From positions 365,986,001 through 366,050,000 of the forward strand of contig NW_027362769.1 of the NCBI RefSeq assembly GCF_046119375.1: a DNA stretch of 64,000 nt, given 5' to 3'. The notes under the pieces were generated by a model, which ran no database searches, was not told the DNA's origin, and saw only the letters and a program-made list of their open reading frames with translations. Position 1 is the first letter of the stretch; each line of letters begins with the position of its first letter. Source of the DNA: Phyllobates terribilis (Eukaryota). The position numbers were made by a program, and so were the translations under genes. Of this stretch, positions 5,425 to 56,399 are shown one piece after another.

Positions 5425-5440
5425 GGCTCTGAAAAGAGCC
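5425..5440 (-). terminator. Histone 3' stem-loop of the decayed H4; downstream element displaced by the LTR
   Basis: Minus strand GGCTCTTTTCAGAGCC, then ACCG, then the LTR end. Confidence 0.93.
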
Positions 5441-13100: not shown

Positions 13101-13132
<32 letters not shown>

Positions 13133-15177
13133 GTCTGTCTTTCTGTCTGTCTTTCTGTCTGTCTGTCTGTCCTGGAAATCCCGCGTCGCTCATTGGTCCG
13201 GCAGAGGCCAATCAGCGCCGCGGGATTTCTAAAAAAAGATGGCGGCCGTTAGCGGCTCATCTGACGGACGGAGGTCAGCGGCGATGCAGCGGGGAGATGA
13301 GCGGCGCTAGCAGCACAACTACCCCGACCGGCGCCGCTGACCTCCATGCGACTAACGTCGGAAGATCAGCGGCTTGGCCCGCTGATCTCCCGACAGCAAG
13401 TGTGAACGGAGGACCGGGGAGTGGCGCCGCTGGTCGGGATGCTTCTGCTGCGAGCAGCCGCTCATCTCCCAGCTTCTCGCAGCAGAAGGAGCCGCACAAG
13501 CAGCGCCGCTCCCCGGTCCTCGCTAATACGGAGCTGCACAAGCAGCACCGCTCCCGGGCCCACACTAATACCATGCTGATTGGTCGCGGTGGCCGGCCGC
13601 GACCAATCAGCGAGATGGGCGGCAAATTTAAACGCCGCTCTGCTGATTGGTTGCTGCCGGCCACCGCGACCAATGAGCGAGATGGACGGCAAATTTAAAC
13701 GCCGCTCTGCTGATTAATCGCCGCCAGCCACCGCGACCAATCAGCGAGATGGGCGGCAAATTTAAACGCCGCTGTGCTGATTGGTCGCGGCCGGCTACCG
13801 CGACCAATCAGCGAGATGGACGGCAAATTTAAACGCCGCTCTGCTGATTGGTCGCGGTAGCCGGCCGTGACCAATCAGCGAGATGAGTGGCAAATTTAAA
13901 CGTTGCTCTGCTGATTGGTCGCGGCCGGCCACCGCGACCAATCAGCGAGATGTCCGGCAAATTTAAACGCCGCTCTGCTGATTCGTCGCGGTGGCCGGCA
14001 GTCCGCGACCAATCAGCGAGATTGGCGCCAAATTTAAACAACGCTCTGCTGATTGGTCGCTGACGCCAGACGCGACCAATCAGCGAGATTGGCGCCAAAT
14101 TTAAACAACGCTCTGCTGATTGGTCGCGGACGGCAGACGCGACCAATCAGCGAGATTGGCGCCAAATTTAAACAACGCTCTGCTGATCGGTTGCGGTGGC
14201 CGGCCGCGACCAATCAGCGATTTTGGTGCCAATTTGAAACACCGCTCTCCTGATTGGTCGCGGTCACCGGCCGCGACCAATGAGCAGTATTGGCGCCAAA
14301 TTTAAACCCCGCTCTGCTGATTGGTCGCCACCGCTGGCCACGACCAATCAGCGATTTTGGTGCCAAATTTAAACAACGCTCTGCTGATTGGTCGCGGTCG
14401 CCAGCCGCAAACAATCAGCAGTATTGGCGCAAAATTTAAACCCTGCTCTGCTGATTGGTCGCGACTGCCGGGCGCGACCAATCAGCGATTTTGGCGCCAA
14501 ATGTAATCTCCGCTCTGCTGATTGGTCGCCAGCCGCGACCAATCAGCAGTATTGGGGCCAAATTTAAACCTCACTCTGCTGATTAGTCGCAACCACCTGT
14601 CGTGACCAATCAGCGATATTGGCGCCAAATTTAAACACTGCTTCGCTAATTGGTCGTGGTGGCCGGCCGCGACCAATCAGCGATATTGGCACCATATTTA
14701 AACACCGCTCTGCTCATTGGTCGCGGTTACCGGTCACGAATAACCAGCATTATTGGCGACAAATTTAAACACCGCTCTGCTGATTAGTCGCGGCCGTAAC
14801 CAATCACCATTACTGGCGCCAAATTTAAATAACGCTCTGCTGATTGGTCGCGACCGCCGGCCGCAACCAATCAGCATTATTGCTGCCAAATTTAAACCTC
14901 ACTCTGCTGATTGGTCACGTTCGCTGGCCGCGACCAATCAGCATTATTGGCGCCAAATTTAAACACCGCTCTGCTGATTAGTCGCGACCGCCGGCCGTGA
15001 CCAATCTGCGATATAGGCGCCAAGTTTTAACACCGCTTTGCTAATTGGTCGCGGTTGCTAGCCTCGACCAATCAGCGATTTTGGCGCCAAATTTTAAAAC
15101 CGCTCTGCTGATTGCGCCCGGTCGGCCGCATACCTATTCTAGAATACCCGATGCGTTAGAATCGGGCCAACATCTAG
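13077..15177 (+). mobile_element. Non-autonomous Helitron-type element
   Basis: 5' TCTACTATATAATTGTC, (CTGT)n, 3' hairpin CCCGATGCGTTAGAATCGGG followed by CTAG; inserted between A and T; no TSD. Confidence 0.88.
13580..15115. repeat. About 67-bp palindromic minisatellite (about 23 units), each with inverted CCAAT boxes
   Basis: Unit AAATTTAAACGCCGCTCTGCTGATTGGTCGCGGCCGGCCACCGCGACCAATCAGCGAGATGGGCGGC. Confidence 0.95.
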
Positions 15178-27657: not shown

Positions 27658-30341
27658 CTAGATGGTGGCCCGATTCTAACGCATCGGGTATTCTAGAATA
27701 GGTATGCGGCCGACCGGGCGCAATCAGCAGAGCGGTATTTAAATTTGGCGCCAAAATCGCTGATTGGTCGAGGCCGGCAACCGCGACCAATTAGCAAAGC
27801 GGTGTTAAAATTTGGCGCCTATATCGCAGATTTGTCACTGCCGGCGGTCGCGACTAATCAGCAGAGCGGGGTTTAAATTTGGCGCCAATAATGCTGATTG
27901 GTCGCGGCCGGCGGTCGCGACCAATCAGCAGAGCGTTATTTAAATTTGTCGCCAATAATGGTGATTGGTCACGGCCGCGACTAATCAGCAGAGCAGTGTT
28001 TAAATTTGTCGCCAATAATGCTGGTTATTCGTGACCGGTAACCGCGACCAATGAGCAGAGCGGTGTTTAAATATGGGGCCAATATCGCTTAATGGTCACG
28101 GCCGGCCACCACGACCAATCAGCGAAGCGGTGTTTAAATTTGGCGCCAAAATCGCTGATTTGTCGCGCCCGGCGGTCGCGACCAATCAGCAGAGCGGGGT
28201 TTAAATTTTGCGCCAATACTGCTGATTGTTCGCGGCCGGTGACCGCAACCAATCAGCAGAGCGTTGTTTAAATTTGGCACCAAAATTGCTGATTGGTCGT
28301 GACCGTCGGCCGCGACCAATTAGCAGAGCGGGGTTTAAATTTGGCGCCAATACTGCTCATTGGTCGCGGCCGGCGACCGCGACCAATCAGCAGAGCGGTG
28401 TTTTAAATTGCACCAAAATCGCTGATTGGTCGCGGCCGGCCACCGCAACCAATCAGCAGAGCGTTGTTTAAATTTGGCGCTAATCTCGCTGATTGGTCGC
28501 GTCTGCCAGCCGCGACCAATCAGCAGAGCCTTGTTTAAATATGGCGCCAATCTCGCTGATTGGTCGCGGACGGCAGGCCACCGCGACCAATCAGCAGAGC
28601 GGAGTTTAAATGTGCCGCCCATCTCGCTGATTGGTCGCGGACGGCCACCGCGACCAATGAGCAGAGCGGCGTTTAAATTTGCGGGCCATCTCGCTGATTG
28701 GTCGCGGCCGGCCACCGCGACCAATCAGCAGAGCGGCGTTTAAATTTGCCGCCCATCTCTCTGATTGGTCGCGGTCGGCCACCGCGACCAATCAGCAGAG
28801 CGGCGTTTAAATTTGGCGCCAATACTGCTCATTGGTCGCGGCCGGCGACCGCGAACAATCAGCAGAGCGGTGTTTCAAATTGGCACCAAAATCGCTGATT
28901 GGTTGCGGCCGGCCACCGCAACCAATCAGCAGAGCGTTGTTTAAATTTGGCGCTAATCTCGCTGATTGGACGCGTCTGCCGTCCGCGACCAATAAGCAGA
29001 GCGTTGTATAAATTTGGCGCCAATCTCGCTGATTGGTCGCGTCTGGCGTCAGCGACCAATCAGCAGAGCGTTGTTTAAATTTGGCGCCAATCTCGCTGAT
29101 TGGCCGCGGCTGGCAGCCGCGACCAATCAGCAGAGCGTTGTTTAAATTTGGCGCCAATCTCGCTGATTGGTCGCGGACGGCCGGCCACCGCGACCAATCA
29201 GCAGAGCGGCGTTTAAATGTGCCGCCCATATCGCTGATTGGTCGCGGTCACCGCGACCAATCAGCAGAGCGGCGTTTAAATTTGCCGCCGATATCGCTGA
29301 TTGGTCGCGGTGGCCGGCCGCGACCAATGAGCAGAGTGGCGTTTAAATTTGCCGCCCATCTCGCTGATTGGTCGCGGTGGCCGGCCGCGATTAATCAGCA
29401 CAGCGGCGTTTAAATTTGCCGCCCATCTCGCTGATTGGTCGCGGCCGGCCACCGCGACCAATCAGCACAGCGGTGTTTAAATTTGCCTCCCATCTCGCTG
29501 ATTGGTCGCTGCAGCCACCGCGACCAATCAGCAGAGCGGCGTTTAAATTTGCCGCCCATCTCGCTGATTGGTCGCGGCCGGCCACCGCGACCAATCAGCA
29601 GTGGGGCGTTTAAATTTGCCGCCCATCTCGCTGATTGGTCGCGGTCGGCCGGCCACCGTGACCAATCAGCAGAGCGGTGTTTAAATTTGCCGCCCATCTC
29701 GCTCATTGGTCACTCCCGGCCACCGCGACCAATCAGCAGAGCGGCGTTTAAATTTGCCGCCCATCTCGCTCATCGGTCACTCCCGGCCACCGCGACCAAT
29801 CAGCAGAGCGGCGTTTAAATTTGCCGCCCATCTCGCTGATTGGTCGCGTATGGCCACTGCGACCAATCAGCGTCGTATTAGTGTGAGCCCGGGAGCGGCG
29901 CTGCTTGTGCGGCTCCGTATTAGCGAGGACCGGGGAGCGCCGCTGCCTGTGAGGCTCCATCTGCTGCGAGAAGCCGGGAGATGAGCGACTGCTCGCAGCA
30001 GAAGCGTCCCGACCGGCGGCACCGCTCCCCGGTCCTCCGTTCACACTTGCTGTCGGGAGATCAACGGGCCAAGCCGCTGATCTTCCGACGTTAGCCGCAT
30101 GGAGGTCAGCGGCGCCGGTCGGGGTAGTTGTGCTGCTAGCGCCGCTCATCTCCCCGCTGCATCGCCGCTGACCTCCGTCCGCCAGATGAGCCGCTAACGG
30201 CCGCCATCTTTTTTCAGAAATCCCGCGGCGCTGATTGCCCGCTGCCGGACCAATGAGCGACGCGGGATTTCCAGGACAGACAAACAGAAAGACAGACAGA
30301 CAGATAGACAGACAGATGGGATAAGACAATTATATAGTAGA
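27658..30341 (-). mobile_element. Second copy of the non-autonomous Helitron, with about 32 units of the 67-bp CCAAT palindrome
   Basis: Same TC 5' end, (CTGT)n, hairpin and CTAG 3' end; A|T target. Confidence 0.88.
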
Positions 30342-31969
30342 TGTGACTCACATGTTTCTATCTGTCTAATCTATGTGTGATGCTCTATTCTTTCTGTTCT
30401 AAATTGTCGGGTAATGCCACATCTACCAAGGCTGTGACATTACAGTGAGTGGTAGACAATCCCTGTATGATTGGTGCTCTAAATAGCGCCAAACATGCAG
30501 TATTCGGCGAGCTCCCAGCATCTCGAGTACTGAGATGCTCGGCGAGTACCGAGCAGTGGCAAGCATGGTCGCTCATCACTAGTGTTCCCACATTCCACTG
30601 AGTCTGAGATCACCGAGGCTGATCAGCTGATCTTCAGCTTATGAACCCAAGTGACCTCACTCTTGCAGCTGCAATGTATACTGGCAGTAGTGATTACACC
30701 CCTGTCAGTGTACATTGCTGTCTTCTACAGCAGTGACATCAGTGATTGCTGAAGTCACTGCTGTAGATGTGACCCGGATCGCCGAGGGACAATCTGGATT
30801 GCGTCATGATAGCGGACATGTGAGGGATATGGTTGTTTTTTATTTTTAGTTATTTTACAAAAGATAGGGCTTCGGGGATTGAGCATATAATAAAAAAAAA
30901 TATTAAAACAGCTTTCAGATGCCCCAGAAATTACATGAATGGGAATGCTGATGAAAATTGGGTGAATTGGATTAGCTTACACCTAGCTCTTTTGTTTGGT
31001 GATGACAAAATGTCAATCAGACCCTGTCATTACCAAGCCTAAATAAAGTAAAGTAAAGAGTTAAATAAACACACAGACACAGAGTAAACACTTTATTTGA
31101 AATACAACAGACACATTCTGTTAAGGGAATCTGCCACCCCCTGGGAGATATCAGACCTCTACTATGGGCATACAGGTTGTAGAAAAGAAAATCTATACAT
31201 ACCTGTATGGCTCATAGTAGAGGCTTGATTGCAGAGAAAAGTGTTTTCATCTACTCTATTTTCCACAGGCTTGGCATCCCCCGGATGCCAATAAATCCCC
31301 ACCTAACTGTATATTGTTCCCCAAAATATCCGCCTATATGGTTAGTTACCTTATTACCCCACTGCCCTACACGTCACACGGCCCTGTGATGTGCTCTGTT
31401 CTACCTCACTTCTCGGGCATGAGCAAAGTGCCGCTCACATAAGGCGCGCTTTGCTTCATACTGGCGCCGTCCCTCTCTGCACTGCGCCGCAGGGTTCCAT
31501 TGCGCAGGCACCGGGAAGTGATAGTTACTGCATACGCAATAACAGTATAGGAGACCCACTCTTTAATAATGGGAACAACAAAGCATAGCCAGCTGATGGC
31601 TTATTCACTCTTTATATCCATGAAAGGAAACCGAAGCATCCCTGACCCCGGGTCTTGTATTACAGAAAGCGGAGACTGCTCAACTAAAATCTCCAGATTA
31701 ATGTATGGGATGTAAACGACCAATGATCGCTGAACACAAGCTGCTTTCCCGATATAGGTCGGTCATAGAACCTTGTGTTATATGGAGACAAAGAACAGAA
31801 AAGCCATCAGCCGCTGAGCGGGAACTTCAAACTCATGAACAAAAAGTCACGTGACCTGTGTAGGCTGCGTCTTATTGGTGTTTCCACAAGTCTGCTTCAC
31901 ATTGGCGGCTTCAGATCCATCCAATGATAAGGTAGGAGGTCGGGGCAGCGGTGGATAAAAAGCGACTGA

Positions 31970-32395
<426 letters not shown>

Positions 32396-32446
32396 AGGCG
32401 CCTCCAGCTCCGGCCTCAGTGTTTTGTTGTAGTTCCGCAGCACACG

Positions 32447-33103
32447 ATGGCAGAGACCGCACCAGCCGCCGCTCCCCCTCCCGCGGAACCGGCCGCCAAA
32501 TCCAAGAAGCAGCCGAAGAAATCCGCCGCCGGGGACGTCAAAAAAAGCAAGAAGCCCTCCGGTCCCAGCGTCTCCGATCTGATCGTGAAAGCCGTGTCCG
32601 CCTCTAAGGAGCGCAGTGGGGTGTCTCTGGCCGCCCTGAAGAAGGCTCTGTCTGCCGGAGGATACGATGTAGAGAAGAACAACAGCCGCCTGAAGCTGGC
32701 CGTCAAGTCTCTGGTCACCAAGGGCGCCCTCCTCCAGGTGAAGGGCAGCGGCGCCTCCGGGTCCTTCAAGCTGAACAAGAAGCAGCAGGAGACTAAGGAC
32801 AAATCGGCCAGGAAGAACTCAGCAGCTGCGGCCAAGCCCAAGAAGCCTGCTAAAGCCAAGAAAGCCGCCAAGTCTCCTAAGAAGCCCAAGAAGGCTCCGA
32901 CCGCGGCCAAGAAGAGCCCGAAAAAGGCCAAGAAGCCCGCAGCAGCTGCCAAGAAGGCGGCCAAGAGCCCCAAGAAGCCAAAGGCCGCTCCGAAGCCCAA
33001 GAAGGTGACGAAGAGTCCGGCTAAGAAAGCTGCTAAACCCAAAGCTGCCAAGAGTCCTGCTAAGAAGGCAGCTAAAGCCAAGAAGCCCGCAGCTAAGAAA
33101 TAA
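32447..33103 (+). CDS. H1: Linker histone H1 (somatic type), 218 aa
   Basis: Globular domain [28 protein letters not shown]...[11 protein letters not shown] and a K/A/P-rich tail; stem-loop at 33134-33149 with one stem mismatch. Confidence 0.97.
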
Positions 33104-33147
33104 TCCAAAGCCGCCCTGTTATTACCCCACAAAGGCTCTTTTCAGAT

Positions 33148-33923
33148 CCACCACCTTGTTCCCTGCAGAGCTGTATGATCAGTGCCATCATCGTGTCCCC
33201 TTCATAGCTGTATGATCAGTGCCACCACCTTGTACCCTGCAGAGCTGTATGATCAGTGCCATCATCTTGTCCCGGCAGAGCTATATTATCAATGCCACCA
33301 CCTTGTACCCTGCAGAGCTGTATGATCAGTGCCCCCACCTTGTCCCCGGCAGAGCTGTATGATCAGTGCCCCCACCTTGTCCCCGGCAGAGCTGTATGAT
33401 CAGTGCCACCACCTTGTCCCCTTCAGAGCTGTATGATCAGTGCCACCACCTTGTACCCTGCAGAGCTGTATGATCAGTGCCACCACCTTTTCCCTGGCAG
33501 AGCTGTGACCAGTGCCACCACCTTGTTCCTTGTAGAGCTGTGTGATCAGTGCCACCACCTTGTCCTCGGCTGAGCTGTATGATCAGTGCCACCACCTTGT
33601 CCCTGGCAGAGCTGTATGATCAGTGCCACCACCTTGTCCCCGGCAGAGCTGTATGATCAGTGCCATCACCTTGTCCCCGGCAGAGCTGTATGATCAGTAC
33701 CACCACCTTGTCCCCTGCAGAGCTGTATGATCAGTGCCACCACCTTGTCCCCTGCAGAGCTGTATGATCAGTGCCACCACCTTGTCCCCGGCAGAGCTGT
33801 ATGATCAGTGCCACCACCTTGTCCCCTGCAGAGCTGTATGATCAGTGCCACCACCTTGTCCCCTGCAGAGCTGTATGATCAGTGCCACCACCTTGTCCCC
33901 GGCAGAGCTGTATGATCAGTGCC
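33148..33923 (+). repeat. 37-bp minisatellite (about 21 units), each containing the cleavage-site flank and an HDE-like AGAGCTGTA
   Basis: Unit CCACCACCTTGTCCCCTGCAGAGCTGTATGATCAGTG begins at the base of the H1 stem-loop. Confidence 0.95.
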
Positions 33924-34517
33924 CGTATATCCTGCCTCTTCTAGATTATAGTGTGTACAGGGAGCGGCTCCAGTGTTATAATGAATAAGCTTTTCCCCAC
34001 ATCTCCGCATAGAGCTGCGCTGTGTCCCGATCACACCAGTGCAGGTGACCGATCAGTGTAATCAATGGAGGGAAGGGGCCGATGTCCTACAGAAATCTAC
34101 ATCATCCTAATCAATCACCACTTGTAACCTGCGTCTTTATTAGTGAAAGGATTAGTGTGCGGTTATTACTTCGATGTGAGAATTGGAGAACCAGTGATTT
34201 GACTGATGATAGATTAGAGCCTGTACAGCTCCGTGTACTGGTGACATAGAACAGTGACGACTGCGGCTCTTGCTGTAGAAGCCGCATGTAGACATGGTGT
34301 GAACCTGTGCCAGTATCCGCAGCCAGAAAAGAGTGTGAACAGAGACCCTGCCCCTCTTTATGAGGGCGGGATTACTGGGTGTTGGGTTGATTTCGTGAAT
34401 AATGTTTGGTCGCAGACATCGCACGTGTTTTGGCGGCTCATGTTAATTTATGAACTAGCCAATAGAATTGTAGGGGGCGTGTTCACATGACGCGCTAACA
34501 GGAGCAGAGGAGTATAA

Positions 34518-34982
<465 letters not shown>

Positions 34983-36423
34983 ATCCGTCCTACACGTCTG
35001 ACTATAACACAAAGGCTCTTTTCAGAGCCACCAAATCCTCCATAATAACGAGCTAATCCCTCACATCTGCTTCTCTACCCTGATTATTGAATGTCAGCTT
35101 TATATAATCTATTTGGAGTCTGGACTGTGTTGTGAAAGAATCTAGAAAGCATGCGCAGATTTCTTGGTGTATATGATGCGATCATTATAGGACGTCCATT
35201 ATCCAGCGCTATCTCCTGTGAACACTCGCTGACTCCTATCAGCAGCACGGGTCTGATCCTGAAAACGCATCAGGATTAAGAGACTAATATCCTCTGCAGC
35301 TCTGTAGTAGGTTTATCTAGATAATATTAACCTACATTTTATAAAATCCCCACCTCCTTCTTTCAAAGTTCTCTGTAAACTGCAGTATCTCGTTTCTTTA
35401 TATTCCCGGCACTCGGAATATTGCTGGTGTGATGGAGTCACCATTGTTAGAATCAGTTCTGCACTTTGTGTTTATAGAAAGCGGATACTGTTCCCTGGAT
35501 CCTGGAAAACAAGATTCCTGTATGGAACCAAGAGACCATTGATCGCTCAACACAAGCAAATTTCCTGATTTCCGAGAGTCCTGAAACTACGTGATCCAGA
35601 AGGACAAAGAAGAGAAAAAGCCATCAGCCCCTGAGCGGGAACTTCCTATTCGGTAATTCTTAACATTAGCTCCTCCCCTTCCTCTGCTGATTGGCTGAAC
35701 ACAGGACGTTAGGGAGTTTGAATTTTCCGCTCCTTGTAGTTTCCGCAGCTTCTACATGTAATTGTGTTACTACTTCTGCTGTGAAGAGAAGTGTGCGGTC
35801 TATAGATAAAACTCCACTGACCACATTCATGTAATCACCTTCCAGATCACAGTGTATTCTCCATTGGATATGGGACCACTGGAATGAGAATCAATCAGCT
35901 GCTCAGTGATTATGTTACTTATACGGTTCCTTTTTTATTTGACCAATCTGAGCTGTTGTCATTATCTTCTACAGGAATAATTCTGTTCCCAATTGATAAC
36001 AGTACTGTCCTGCCATTATCGCTTGCAGGAAGAGACCCTCTGTAAGCCAAACTGAGGGGATTCCCGGCTTATGAGCTGGTGTCAGTATCGGAGCAGTGCT
36101 GCTGACCGCGGCTTCCTCCCTGCACTGTCCTTAGAAGAGGCAATAATCCTGGCTGCCACAATCCTCCTCACATCACCGCACCCCAAGAGCAATTCTATCA
36201 GAAGTGACAAGCCCATCTTAGAAATGTCAGAGCTCAGTCAGGATCCTATAGATTAGTCACCGGGAGCAGCCAGAATGTCACATGTAGATTGTACAGAATG
36301 CAAGGGATGATGAGGGGAGTAGTAAGGTGCGGAAATGACCCTTCCTGGACATTAGTGAATAGCATGTTACGAATATGCTGGTATGATGGAAGTGGGGGTT
36401 AATCACTGTCAGTGCCGTTATAG

Positions 36424-36942
<519 letters not shown>

Positions 36943-37751
36943 TTGTGTTCTCTGCTCCATCCTGACAATCCAAAGGCTCTTTTCAGAGCCACCACATCTT
37001 CTAAGTGAGGCTACAATTTCCTGCTGGCGAGTAATAATCCCTGTGCTTCTGTGAATGTCAGTGCGAGATTTATACACTGTTTAATAGGAATTAAAATACT
37101 CAGTCATTGTTCATAATTGAGGCCCACCCTTCTCTCTACGATCACTGTGATTGGGGTAAGTGGCTCTGCGCCGTACAGTGGGGTAGAGCTTCCCCCAGAC
37201 CAGATAGCGTTCTCCCTACAAGCAGAGGAGCCGGTAATAAGACAAAGAACGATTGAGCGGGAAATTGAAAACAGCCAACGGATCTGTGATCAGCCAATGA
37301 CAGACAGACATCCTCAGGCGCCGATCAATACCGGATACAAGTATTTCTGCCACTGTTTAACTCTAGTAGCCGTGTGTTTTGTTGATCCCCACTCCGCACT
37401 TACACATGCTTTACAGAAGCGGGGTCTTCCCCAGACCCCGCGACGCTCACATCAGGCTCCTTGTAGAACCTGTGAGACTTCTCCTCAGTTGGATCGGAGC
37501 GAACACCACAGGGTATCAATGTAGATTAGTGGGTGAATGGGGAGCCTCCTGGATGTGTAGATGGAGCGGAGTAGAAGCATCAGATCACTGCTGAATATAC
37601 AGATAACGGCACTGAATGGAATTAACCCCTCTCCCGCCATCCCCTACTTGAGGATTGAATGGCGCTCATAGAACCCACTCCCAAAATAAGTCAGATTTTT
37701 AAAAGTTCGCTCTTCTAGAATTAGGACCTTGTTATCCTCAGGTGATCGGGG

Positions 37752-43695: not shown

Positions 43696-44005
43696 GAACA
43701 CAGGAGCAGCCACAGCTCTGATGTAGACGGGAGAGGACACAGGAGCAGCCACAGCTCTGATGTAGACGGGAGAGGACACAGGAGCAGCCACAGCTCTGAT
43801 GTAGACGGGAGAGGACACAGGAGCAGCCACAGCTCTGATGTAGACGGGAGAGGACACAGGAGCAGCCACAGCTCTGATGTAGACGGGAGAGGACACAGGA
43901 GCAGCCACAGCTCTGATGTAGACGGGAGAGGACACAGGAGCAGCCACAGCTCTGATGTAGACGGGAGAGGACACAGGAGCAGCCACAGCTCTGATGGAGA
44001 CGGGG
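43696..44005 (-). repeat. 39-bp minisatellite, 8 units, each containing the H2B HDE (AGAGCTGTG)
   Basis: Unit (minus strand) CTCTCCCGTCTACATCAGAGCTGTGGCTGCTCCTGTGTC, directly after the stem-loop at 44010-44025. Confidence 0.95.
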
Positions 44006-44058: not shown

Positions 44059-45164
<1,106 letters not shown>

Positions 45165-46516: not shown

Positions 46517-46585
46517 AGCTCTGAAAAGAGCCTTTGTGTTGCCAGGGTGGAGCATCTTGACAACCCAAAGGCTCTTTTCAGAGCC
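46517..46585. terminator. Two orphan histone stem-loops in divergent orientation, each followed by AAGTGAG
   Basis: Minus-strand GGCTCTTTTCAGAGCT (46517-46532) and plus-strand GGCTCTTTTCAGAGCC (46570-46585), 37 bp apart, no CDS between them. Confidence 0.9.
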
Positions 46586-56021: not shown

Positions 56022-56399
56022 TCTGCTCTGTCTGCTGCTCCGCCATCACCATCACCCCAAAGGCTCTTCTAAGAGCCACCACACCATCTACATCAGAGCT
56101 GTGGCTGCTCCTGTGTCCTCTCCTGTCTACGTCTATTCACAGGGTAAATGGCAGGTGGCGCTAGTAGAGCTGATTAAGCCTTTCTAGACTGATAGTGAAA
56201 CCTATGAATGAGTTCCTTCACAGCTCTGATCCTTTCAGTAATCTTATGAGCGAGTTGTCCTGTGTTCAGTGGCTTTTAACTCAACCACTTGCTCCCCAGA
56301 TCAGATATTCCGGGGTCTCCTTTTTATATATTTATCTGTGTCACAGAAGAGCAGATCTCACAACTTTCCAGCCTTTACTTAGTAATTTTCCTCCTGCTG

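Follow-up and report, generated by a model that had tools for sequence, protein, structure and literature searches.

A tandem array behind a poison-frog histone H1 gene, probably a neutral minisatellite derived from the gene's own 3′ processing signal

The window analysed here, a stretch of 64,000 nt from Phyllobates terribilis in which all positions below are counted from the first letter, contains a rearranged frog histone gene cluster with interspersed retroelements. An intact histone H1 open reading frame of 218 aa lies on the forward strand (32447–33103); it was identified in the list of open reading frames and by the Pfam Linker_histone domain, and its product is closest to dendrobatid H1 (94% for Ranitomeya variabilis, 90% for Phyllobates terribilis). 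Ahead of it, a pattern search on the same strand found an H1-box-like AAGCACA (32260), two CCAAT boxes (32330 and 32363) and a TATAA (32390), together spanning 32260–32394, for which we assume the promoter role that such motifs have in known vertebrate H1 promoters. On its upstream side the H1 promoter is joined to a forward-strand copy of the H2B–H2A intergenic promoter, followed by the first ~195 nt of H2A (31843–32236; 95% identity to 44564–44966). The H2A fragment is truncated at 32236 and its reading frame stops after ...AEILE, and the DNA contigs of other H1 copies diverge from the window upstream of 32239, at this same H2A/H1 junction. Downstream, a 3′ UTR of 30 nt separates the H1 stop codon from a histone stem-loop, behind which a 37-bp tandem array begins, and H3 starts about 650 nt beyond the end of that array. 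The spacing from H1 to H3 is 1469 nt, against 1042–1064 nt at the H1 genes that were looked up (R. variabilis, P. terribilis and R. imitator); the shorter spacing at these dendrobatid loci would fit shorter arrays without being proof of them.

Elsewhere in the window, two arrays of a 67-bp unit (13574–15129 and 27721–29871, with 23 and 32 copies) stand in opposite orientation. Their unit has two inverted CCAAT boxes and an E2F-like motif, TTTGGCGCC, and looks promoter-derived. The flanking segments at 13129–13594 and 30317–29852 are inverted arms with 94% identity, an arrangement that points to a large inverted duplication around ~12.6 kb of retroelement sequence. At 46517–46585, two H4-type stem-loops with their flanks face each other ~38 nt apart (46532 on the reverse and 46570 on the forward strand) with no histone open reading frame attached; judged by its layout, this orphan pair is most probably a 3′ end fragment duplicated in inverted orientation. 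The H4 stem-loop at 5425–5440 on the reverse strand has no HDE-like element in its downstream sequence, and a run of N occupies 44202–44337.

The run data used here are assembled contigs of public sequencing runs, mapped over 32000–33340, a span that takes in the beginning of the array. H1 contigs from RNA-like runs come mainly from paralogues about 97% identical to the window copy (the longest, X2, measures 645 nt and has 17 differences), and at several positions (32535–32554, 32804–32878) the window's own letters are unseen in the RNA contigs. Among the listed differences between the open reading frame and the paralogue contigs, 18 are synonymous and 9 non-synonymous. Coding constraint thus appears to act on the H1 family, and the open reading frame of the window copy is itself unbroken. 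In the 5′ UTR, at 32424/32425, the window copy is without 19 nt (TCCTATCAGGAGATATTTG) that are present in the expressed paralogues and in ~43% of the DNA contig depth. One RNA contig shows adapter and then GGGG immediately 5′ of these 19 nt, which suggests that transcription of the paralogues starts there, so that the window copy may be without the usual start site. Taken together, the truncated H2A, the absence of 19 nt from the 5′ UTR and a mismatch in the stem-loop make the window H1 look like a rearranged minority copy, possibly a decaying one, and unlike a gene that acquired an array to make up for a poor hairpin.

The stem-loop, GGCTCTTTTCAGATCC, occupies 33134–33149 on the forward strand. 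A first-pass annotation of this DNA had noticed a C-U mismatch at its third pair (T at 33147), and Rfam Histone3 flags the same non-standard pair. At 23.4 bits the element stays below the model's gathering score of 34, a threshold that is exceeded by the window's H3 and H4 stem-loops. Its predicted stability is −2.6 kcal/mol, compared with −9.3 kcal/mol for the canonical H3 stem-loop. The expected cleavage region, ACCAC (33150–33154, forward strand), lies 4–5 nt 3′ of the stem; ACCAC or ACCAA also stands behind the window's other histone stem-loops, and given the known mechanism the RNA is presumably cut at this position. The first HDE core, AGAGCTGTA (33167–33175, forward strand), is the predicted U7-binding element of the H1 gene itself and begins 17 nt after the stem. 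The same 17-nt spacing is found at H2A and at both H2B-type flanks, and H3 has 18–19 nt. As a histone HDE, this first element is regular: its core is purine-rich, complementary to the 5′ end of U7 and placed 17 nt past the stem-loop, inside the usual range of about 12–18 nt.

Behind the stem-loop stand 21 tandem units of 37 bp on the forward strand (33148–33921), which were defined with TRF and with a unit table and alignment. TRF reports a single array (33148–33923, period 37, 21.1 copies, 90% matches, no indels); manual delimitation gives 21 full units, with 36 nt in unit 4 and 35 nt in unit 10, and a CC(C) after the last unit. The unit consensus is CCACCACCTTGTCCCCTGCAGAGCTGTATGATCAGTG. Unit 1 opens at the last two C of the 3′ arm of the stem-loop, and each unit copies the cleavage flank CCACCACC together with the U7-complementary core, which is intact in 16 of the 21 units; the stem-loop itself is present only at unit 1. 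The initial description of a 37-bp unit repeated about 21 times from the base of the stem-loop, with CCACCACC and AGAGCTGTA at canonical spacing, agrees with both TRF and the unit table. Because unit 1 is H1's own 3′ processing flank, with ACCAC and the 17-nt spacing as in H2A and H2B, the unit is derived from the gene. A search of 32900–34200 with Histone3 matched no further stem-loop, even at E ≤ 10, and units 2–21 are therefore without an SLBP site. This sustains the view that read-through RNA would have ~21 U7-complementary sites, those of units 2–21 being without stem-loops.

Divergence from the consensus is unevenly spread, with about 3 positions per unit on average in units 1–12 and about 0.9 in units 13–21, which are nearly identical. 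The array closes with two identical blocks of 111 bp, three units each (33700–33810 and 33811–33921, forward strand; exact string identity over 33700–33921), and over units 16–21 column 17 has T,T,G,T,T,G. This block duplication is the mark of recent unequal exchange. The array has the hallmarks of a minisatellite: head-to-tail units within the range of 10–100 bp, homogenised sub-blocks and a higher-order repeat. Its end has microhomology of CC(C) only, and the window holds no unexpanded H1 copy. The human recombination-hotspot 13-mer CCNCCNTNNCCNC occurs in 11 of the units (33335–33900), and the window as a whole has 18 matches against 3 expected. This 13-mer is specific to one human PRDM9 allele. 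We rejected it as an explanation of the array; it is probably a chance product of the C-rich cleavage flank.

A check set in advance was whether the U7-complementary core varies less than the other columns of the unit. Variants shared by neighbouring units were counted as one event, which gives 36 events in total, 6 in the nine core columns and 30 in the other 28, and the expectation of a quieter core was not borne out. Twelve of the 30 events fall in two polymorphic columns, and without these columns the non-core part has 18 events in 26. Variable columns are distributed in the same way (5 of 9 in the core and 15 of 28 in the rest, Fisher p = 1.0). Among the 37 circular windows of nine columns the core ranks 18th, half of the windows being equally or more conserved; the least-changed ones run from the 3′ end of the unit into the CCACC of the next, outside the HDE core. 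From the overall difference rate 12.7 intact cores would be expected, against the 16 that were counted (p = 0.11). The HDE core is as variable as its flanks, with no excess conservation, in a comparison of low power (36 events) that homogenisation confounds.

Duplexes with U7 were computed with the published human U7 5′ end, CAGUGUUACAGCUCUUUUAG (PMC12360213, Table 1), in place of the frog's own; Rfam found no U7 gene within the window. That the core is complementary to U7, as had been stated from the sequence, holds for this RNA, since UACAGCUCU forms part of its 5′ end (PMC12360213). For the consensus unit the prediction is a core duplex of 9 bp and a few weak contacts besides, with −14.5 kcal/mol in all, which is about the 5th percentile of random 45-nt segments of the window; the H2B element, at −18.7 kcal/mol, pairs more strongly. 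The H3 and H4 flanks (35030–35075 and 36991–37035) reach −8.5 kcal/mol, no better than background, so absolute duplex energies with human U7 should not be over-read; the 5′ end of the frog U7 may differ from the human one, or H3 and H4 may lean more on SLBP. Within the array the weakest predicted U7 pairing is that of units 2 and 4, which lie closest to the gene and whose cores are damaged (−9.9 kcal/mol for CATAGCTGTA and −8.9 kcal/mol for AGAGCTATA). Unit 10 (33480–33514) has a 2-nt deletion (AGAGCTGTGACC) that brings it to −20.3 kcal/mol and makes it the strongest predicted U7 site of the array; its stronger complementarity arose by accident. In array RNA the HDE cores are mostly base-paired by prediction, with an opening cost of 2.3–5.5 kcal/mol.

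These predictions bear on the possibility that the downstream units are fail-safe sites, where U7 snRNP would cut read-through RNA or admit CPSF73/Xrn2 and so stop transcription before H3. Intact units do keep CCACCACC and the 9-bp U7 complement at their native within-unit spacing, the neighbouring H3 begins only about 650 nt past the array, and a contig from an RNA-like run (X29) bridges the UTR, the stem-loop and units 1–2, which would show read-through RNA of a paralogue if X29 is RNA. In mouse nuclear extract, moreover, substrates with strong U7 duplexes of 15–16 bp were processed without SLBP (PMC7026596). The same experiments also show the limits of this SLBP-independent processing: it needs 15–16 bp, shortening the duplex to 9 uninterrupted bp left <5% processing, and endogenous U7 did not cleave a substrate that had no stem-loop (PMC7026596). 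Units 2–21 belong to this 9-bp, no-stem-loop class. Their duplex is 9 bp with weak contacts, at an energy near the 5th percentile of random 45-mers, their cores would mostly be paired within the array RNA, the units proximal to the gene are the most degraded, and the core is without excess conservation. The suggestion that the units serve as back-up cleavage sites is disfavoured by the weak pairing of units 2 and 4 and by the poor performance of the published 9-bp and no-stem-loop substrates (PMC7026596), and we regard a role of this kind as unlikely.

DNA runs of the same organism, which may include the assembly's own sample, contain 47–63% of the sampled words of 33150–34400. The contigs that cover units in these runs have very high depth: in a DNA run, summed word depth is 7,000–79,000 over the units and roughly 90–490 over the H1 coding sequence, which makes the unit family ~100–400 times commoner in DNA reads than the coding sequence. 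Contig X29 (33062–33187, one difference) passes from the 3′ UTR through the stem-loop to unit 2 and then diverges, and it follows that at least one H1 paralogue has an array. Two H1 contigs of unknown taxa (L001 and L002; Logan) have ordinary single 3′ flanks and are uninformative on frogs. The first-pass annotation had also proposed that the array compensates for the weak hairpin. This is unlikely in view of the 100–400-fold abundance of the unit family and of the paralogue contig that enters unit 2; on the same two grounds the mismatch seems to have arisen separately in the window copy and not to be the cause of the array.

The DNA contigs also speak to the suspicion that the array, or at least its length, comes from faulty assembly, or that the mismatch in the stem-loop is a sequencing error. 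Tandem arrays are hard to assemble, and the DNA contig over the 3′ UTR stops at 33146, one base short of the mismatched T at 33147. However, private unit variants stand in consistent order, which is rare in collapsed or expanded artefacts, and the words 3′ of the stem-loop are present in several DNA runs at the 47–63% given above. We consider an artefact of either sort very improbable.

A further proposal is that the array acts in bulk, as RNA or as a DNA locus, either by concentrating U7 snRNP at the histone locus body or by titrating it as a sponge. The DNA depth is consistent with the very high copy number that this would call for, and array words do occur in RNA-like runs, where short array contigs in X1 and X2 stand at depths like those of the coding sequence (in X2, up to 64 against 53). 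The low abundance of U7 snRNP among snRNPs makes titration conceivable (PMC7026596). The array signal in the RNA-like runs is nevertheless explained equally well by trace genomic DNA: the ratio of RNA to DNA depth over the array is ~8e-4, a level at which single-copy DNA is invisible, and the single-copy H1 promoter (32270–32404) has, as expected, zero depth in three RNA-like runs. Some array RNA may be present all the same, and unprocessed or read-through paralogue RNA exists if X29 is RNA. The pairing core shows no constraint, and so large a sponge would probably be damaging to the supply of histones unless it were silent. Taken with both sides of this evidence, bulk action seems to us decidedly unlikely.

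How such an array may arise is illustrated by a second one in the window. Behind H2B, a 39-bp unit is repeated 7.9 times on the reverse strand (43698–44004; TRF, 99% matches); it starts 8 nt after the stem-loop and each unit has CATCAGAGCTGTGG. An unexpanded paralogue of this H2B 3′ flank, with one unit, was located by sequence comparison and in the stem-loop list behind a truncated H2B fragment (56062–56140, forward strand). It is bounded by ATCTACATC and GTCTACGTC, a direct repeat matching at 8 of 9 positions and spaced exactly 39 nt apart, and slippage or unequal exchange at this repeat would yield exactly the H2B array. The window has 27 tandem-repeat arrays, which together cover 14.6% of it, a sign that this genome makes minisatellites readily, and given such cover it is unremarkable that an HDE lies inside a repeat at 2 of 9 stem-loops (p = 0.39). 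An array with a unit of ≥30 nt that begins just past a stem-loop must, besides, include the HDE. The starting points are another matter. The H1 37-mer and H2B 39-mer arrays are independent, and both begin within 0–8 nt of a stem-loop; on a rough estimate from ~27 array starts per 64 kb, the chance of such a start is <1% per gene type and ~1e-4 for two of five types. Chance is thus a poor account of array starts at stem-loops, which call for a local bias in mutation or for selection. Transcription–replication conflicts at histone genes, considered as a local source of duplication, found no support in the literature checked. The boldest reading would take the two expansions adjacent to stem-loops as the work of selection, with poison-frog U7-site arrays working in bulk, either by recruiting and holding U7 snRNP at the histone locus or by enforcing termination before the next gene; we would give this long odds.

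The account that we prefer, and hold to be probably correct, is that the array is a gene-derived minisatellite that grew from the H1 3′ processing signal and is probably neutral. Neutral slippage was one of four readings offered at the outset, and it is the sole one that fits the tests run. We infer the following order of events. The 37 nt directly 3′ of the H1 stem-loop, that is, the cleavage flank and the HDE, would first have been duplicated in tandem, and the array would then have changed size in both directions through slippage and unequal exchange. It would have been carried along with H1 during the amplification and rearrangement of the histone cluster, and the unit family would also have expanded to long blocks elsewhere in the poison-frog genome. 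In transcripts, units 2–21 would fall in the downstream cleavage product or in the termination zone and then be degraded. On this account the array does not need a function to be explained.

In terms of known histone HDEs, a normal gene has one HDE and one SLBP-bound stem-loop of 6 bp and 4 nt, whereas the H1 gene of the window has 20 more copies of the element without a stem-loop and without a sign of constraint. The literature searched yielded no account of a satellite that derives from an HDE. In origin and dynamics the closest analogue would seem to be the PcP190 satellite of hyloid frogs, which derives from 5S rDNA and which likewise arose from part of a tandem multigene family and was amplified far past its parents (PMC4201667, PMC11675491). 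The two differ in that PcP190 has a unit of ~190 bp that comes from the transcribed part of a Pol III gene, while the unit described here is 37 bp long, comes from a Pol II 3′ processing signal and is still in its native place. The satellite of the newt Notophthalmus is likewise described as lying directly beside amphibian histone genes; it is said (in work ascribed to Diaz et al. 1981 and Gall et al. 1981) to be interspersed among the histone gene clusters. Unlike the frog array, it reportedly has units of ~220 bp that are not HDE-derived. Newt satellites are transcribed on lampbrush loops, and a review explains this by transcripts that start at the promoters of genes upstream and fail to terminate (PMC5615363). 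With GC-rich minisatellites in general the frog array has in common the short unit, the polar homogenisation, the duplication of a three-unit block and the end microhomology of 2–3 nt (CC). It differs from them in that its unit is a recognisable RNA-processing signal and in that the equivalent segment has been independently expanded at H2B.

The array shows that a satellite family can grow from a short RNA-processing signal. For annotation, arrays of this kind mark histone 3′ ends, and they should not be taken for regulatory innovations unless RNA evidence shows them to be so. Histone genes with differing numbers of U7 sites offer a natural series in which the recruitment of U7 snRNP, termination and the nucleation of the histone locus body could be tested. 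If the arrays are neutral, the question turns into a mutational one, namely why two histone gene families have expanded the segment right after the stem-loop.
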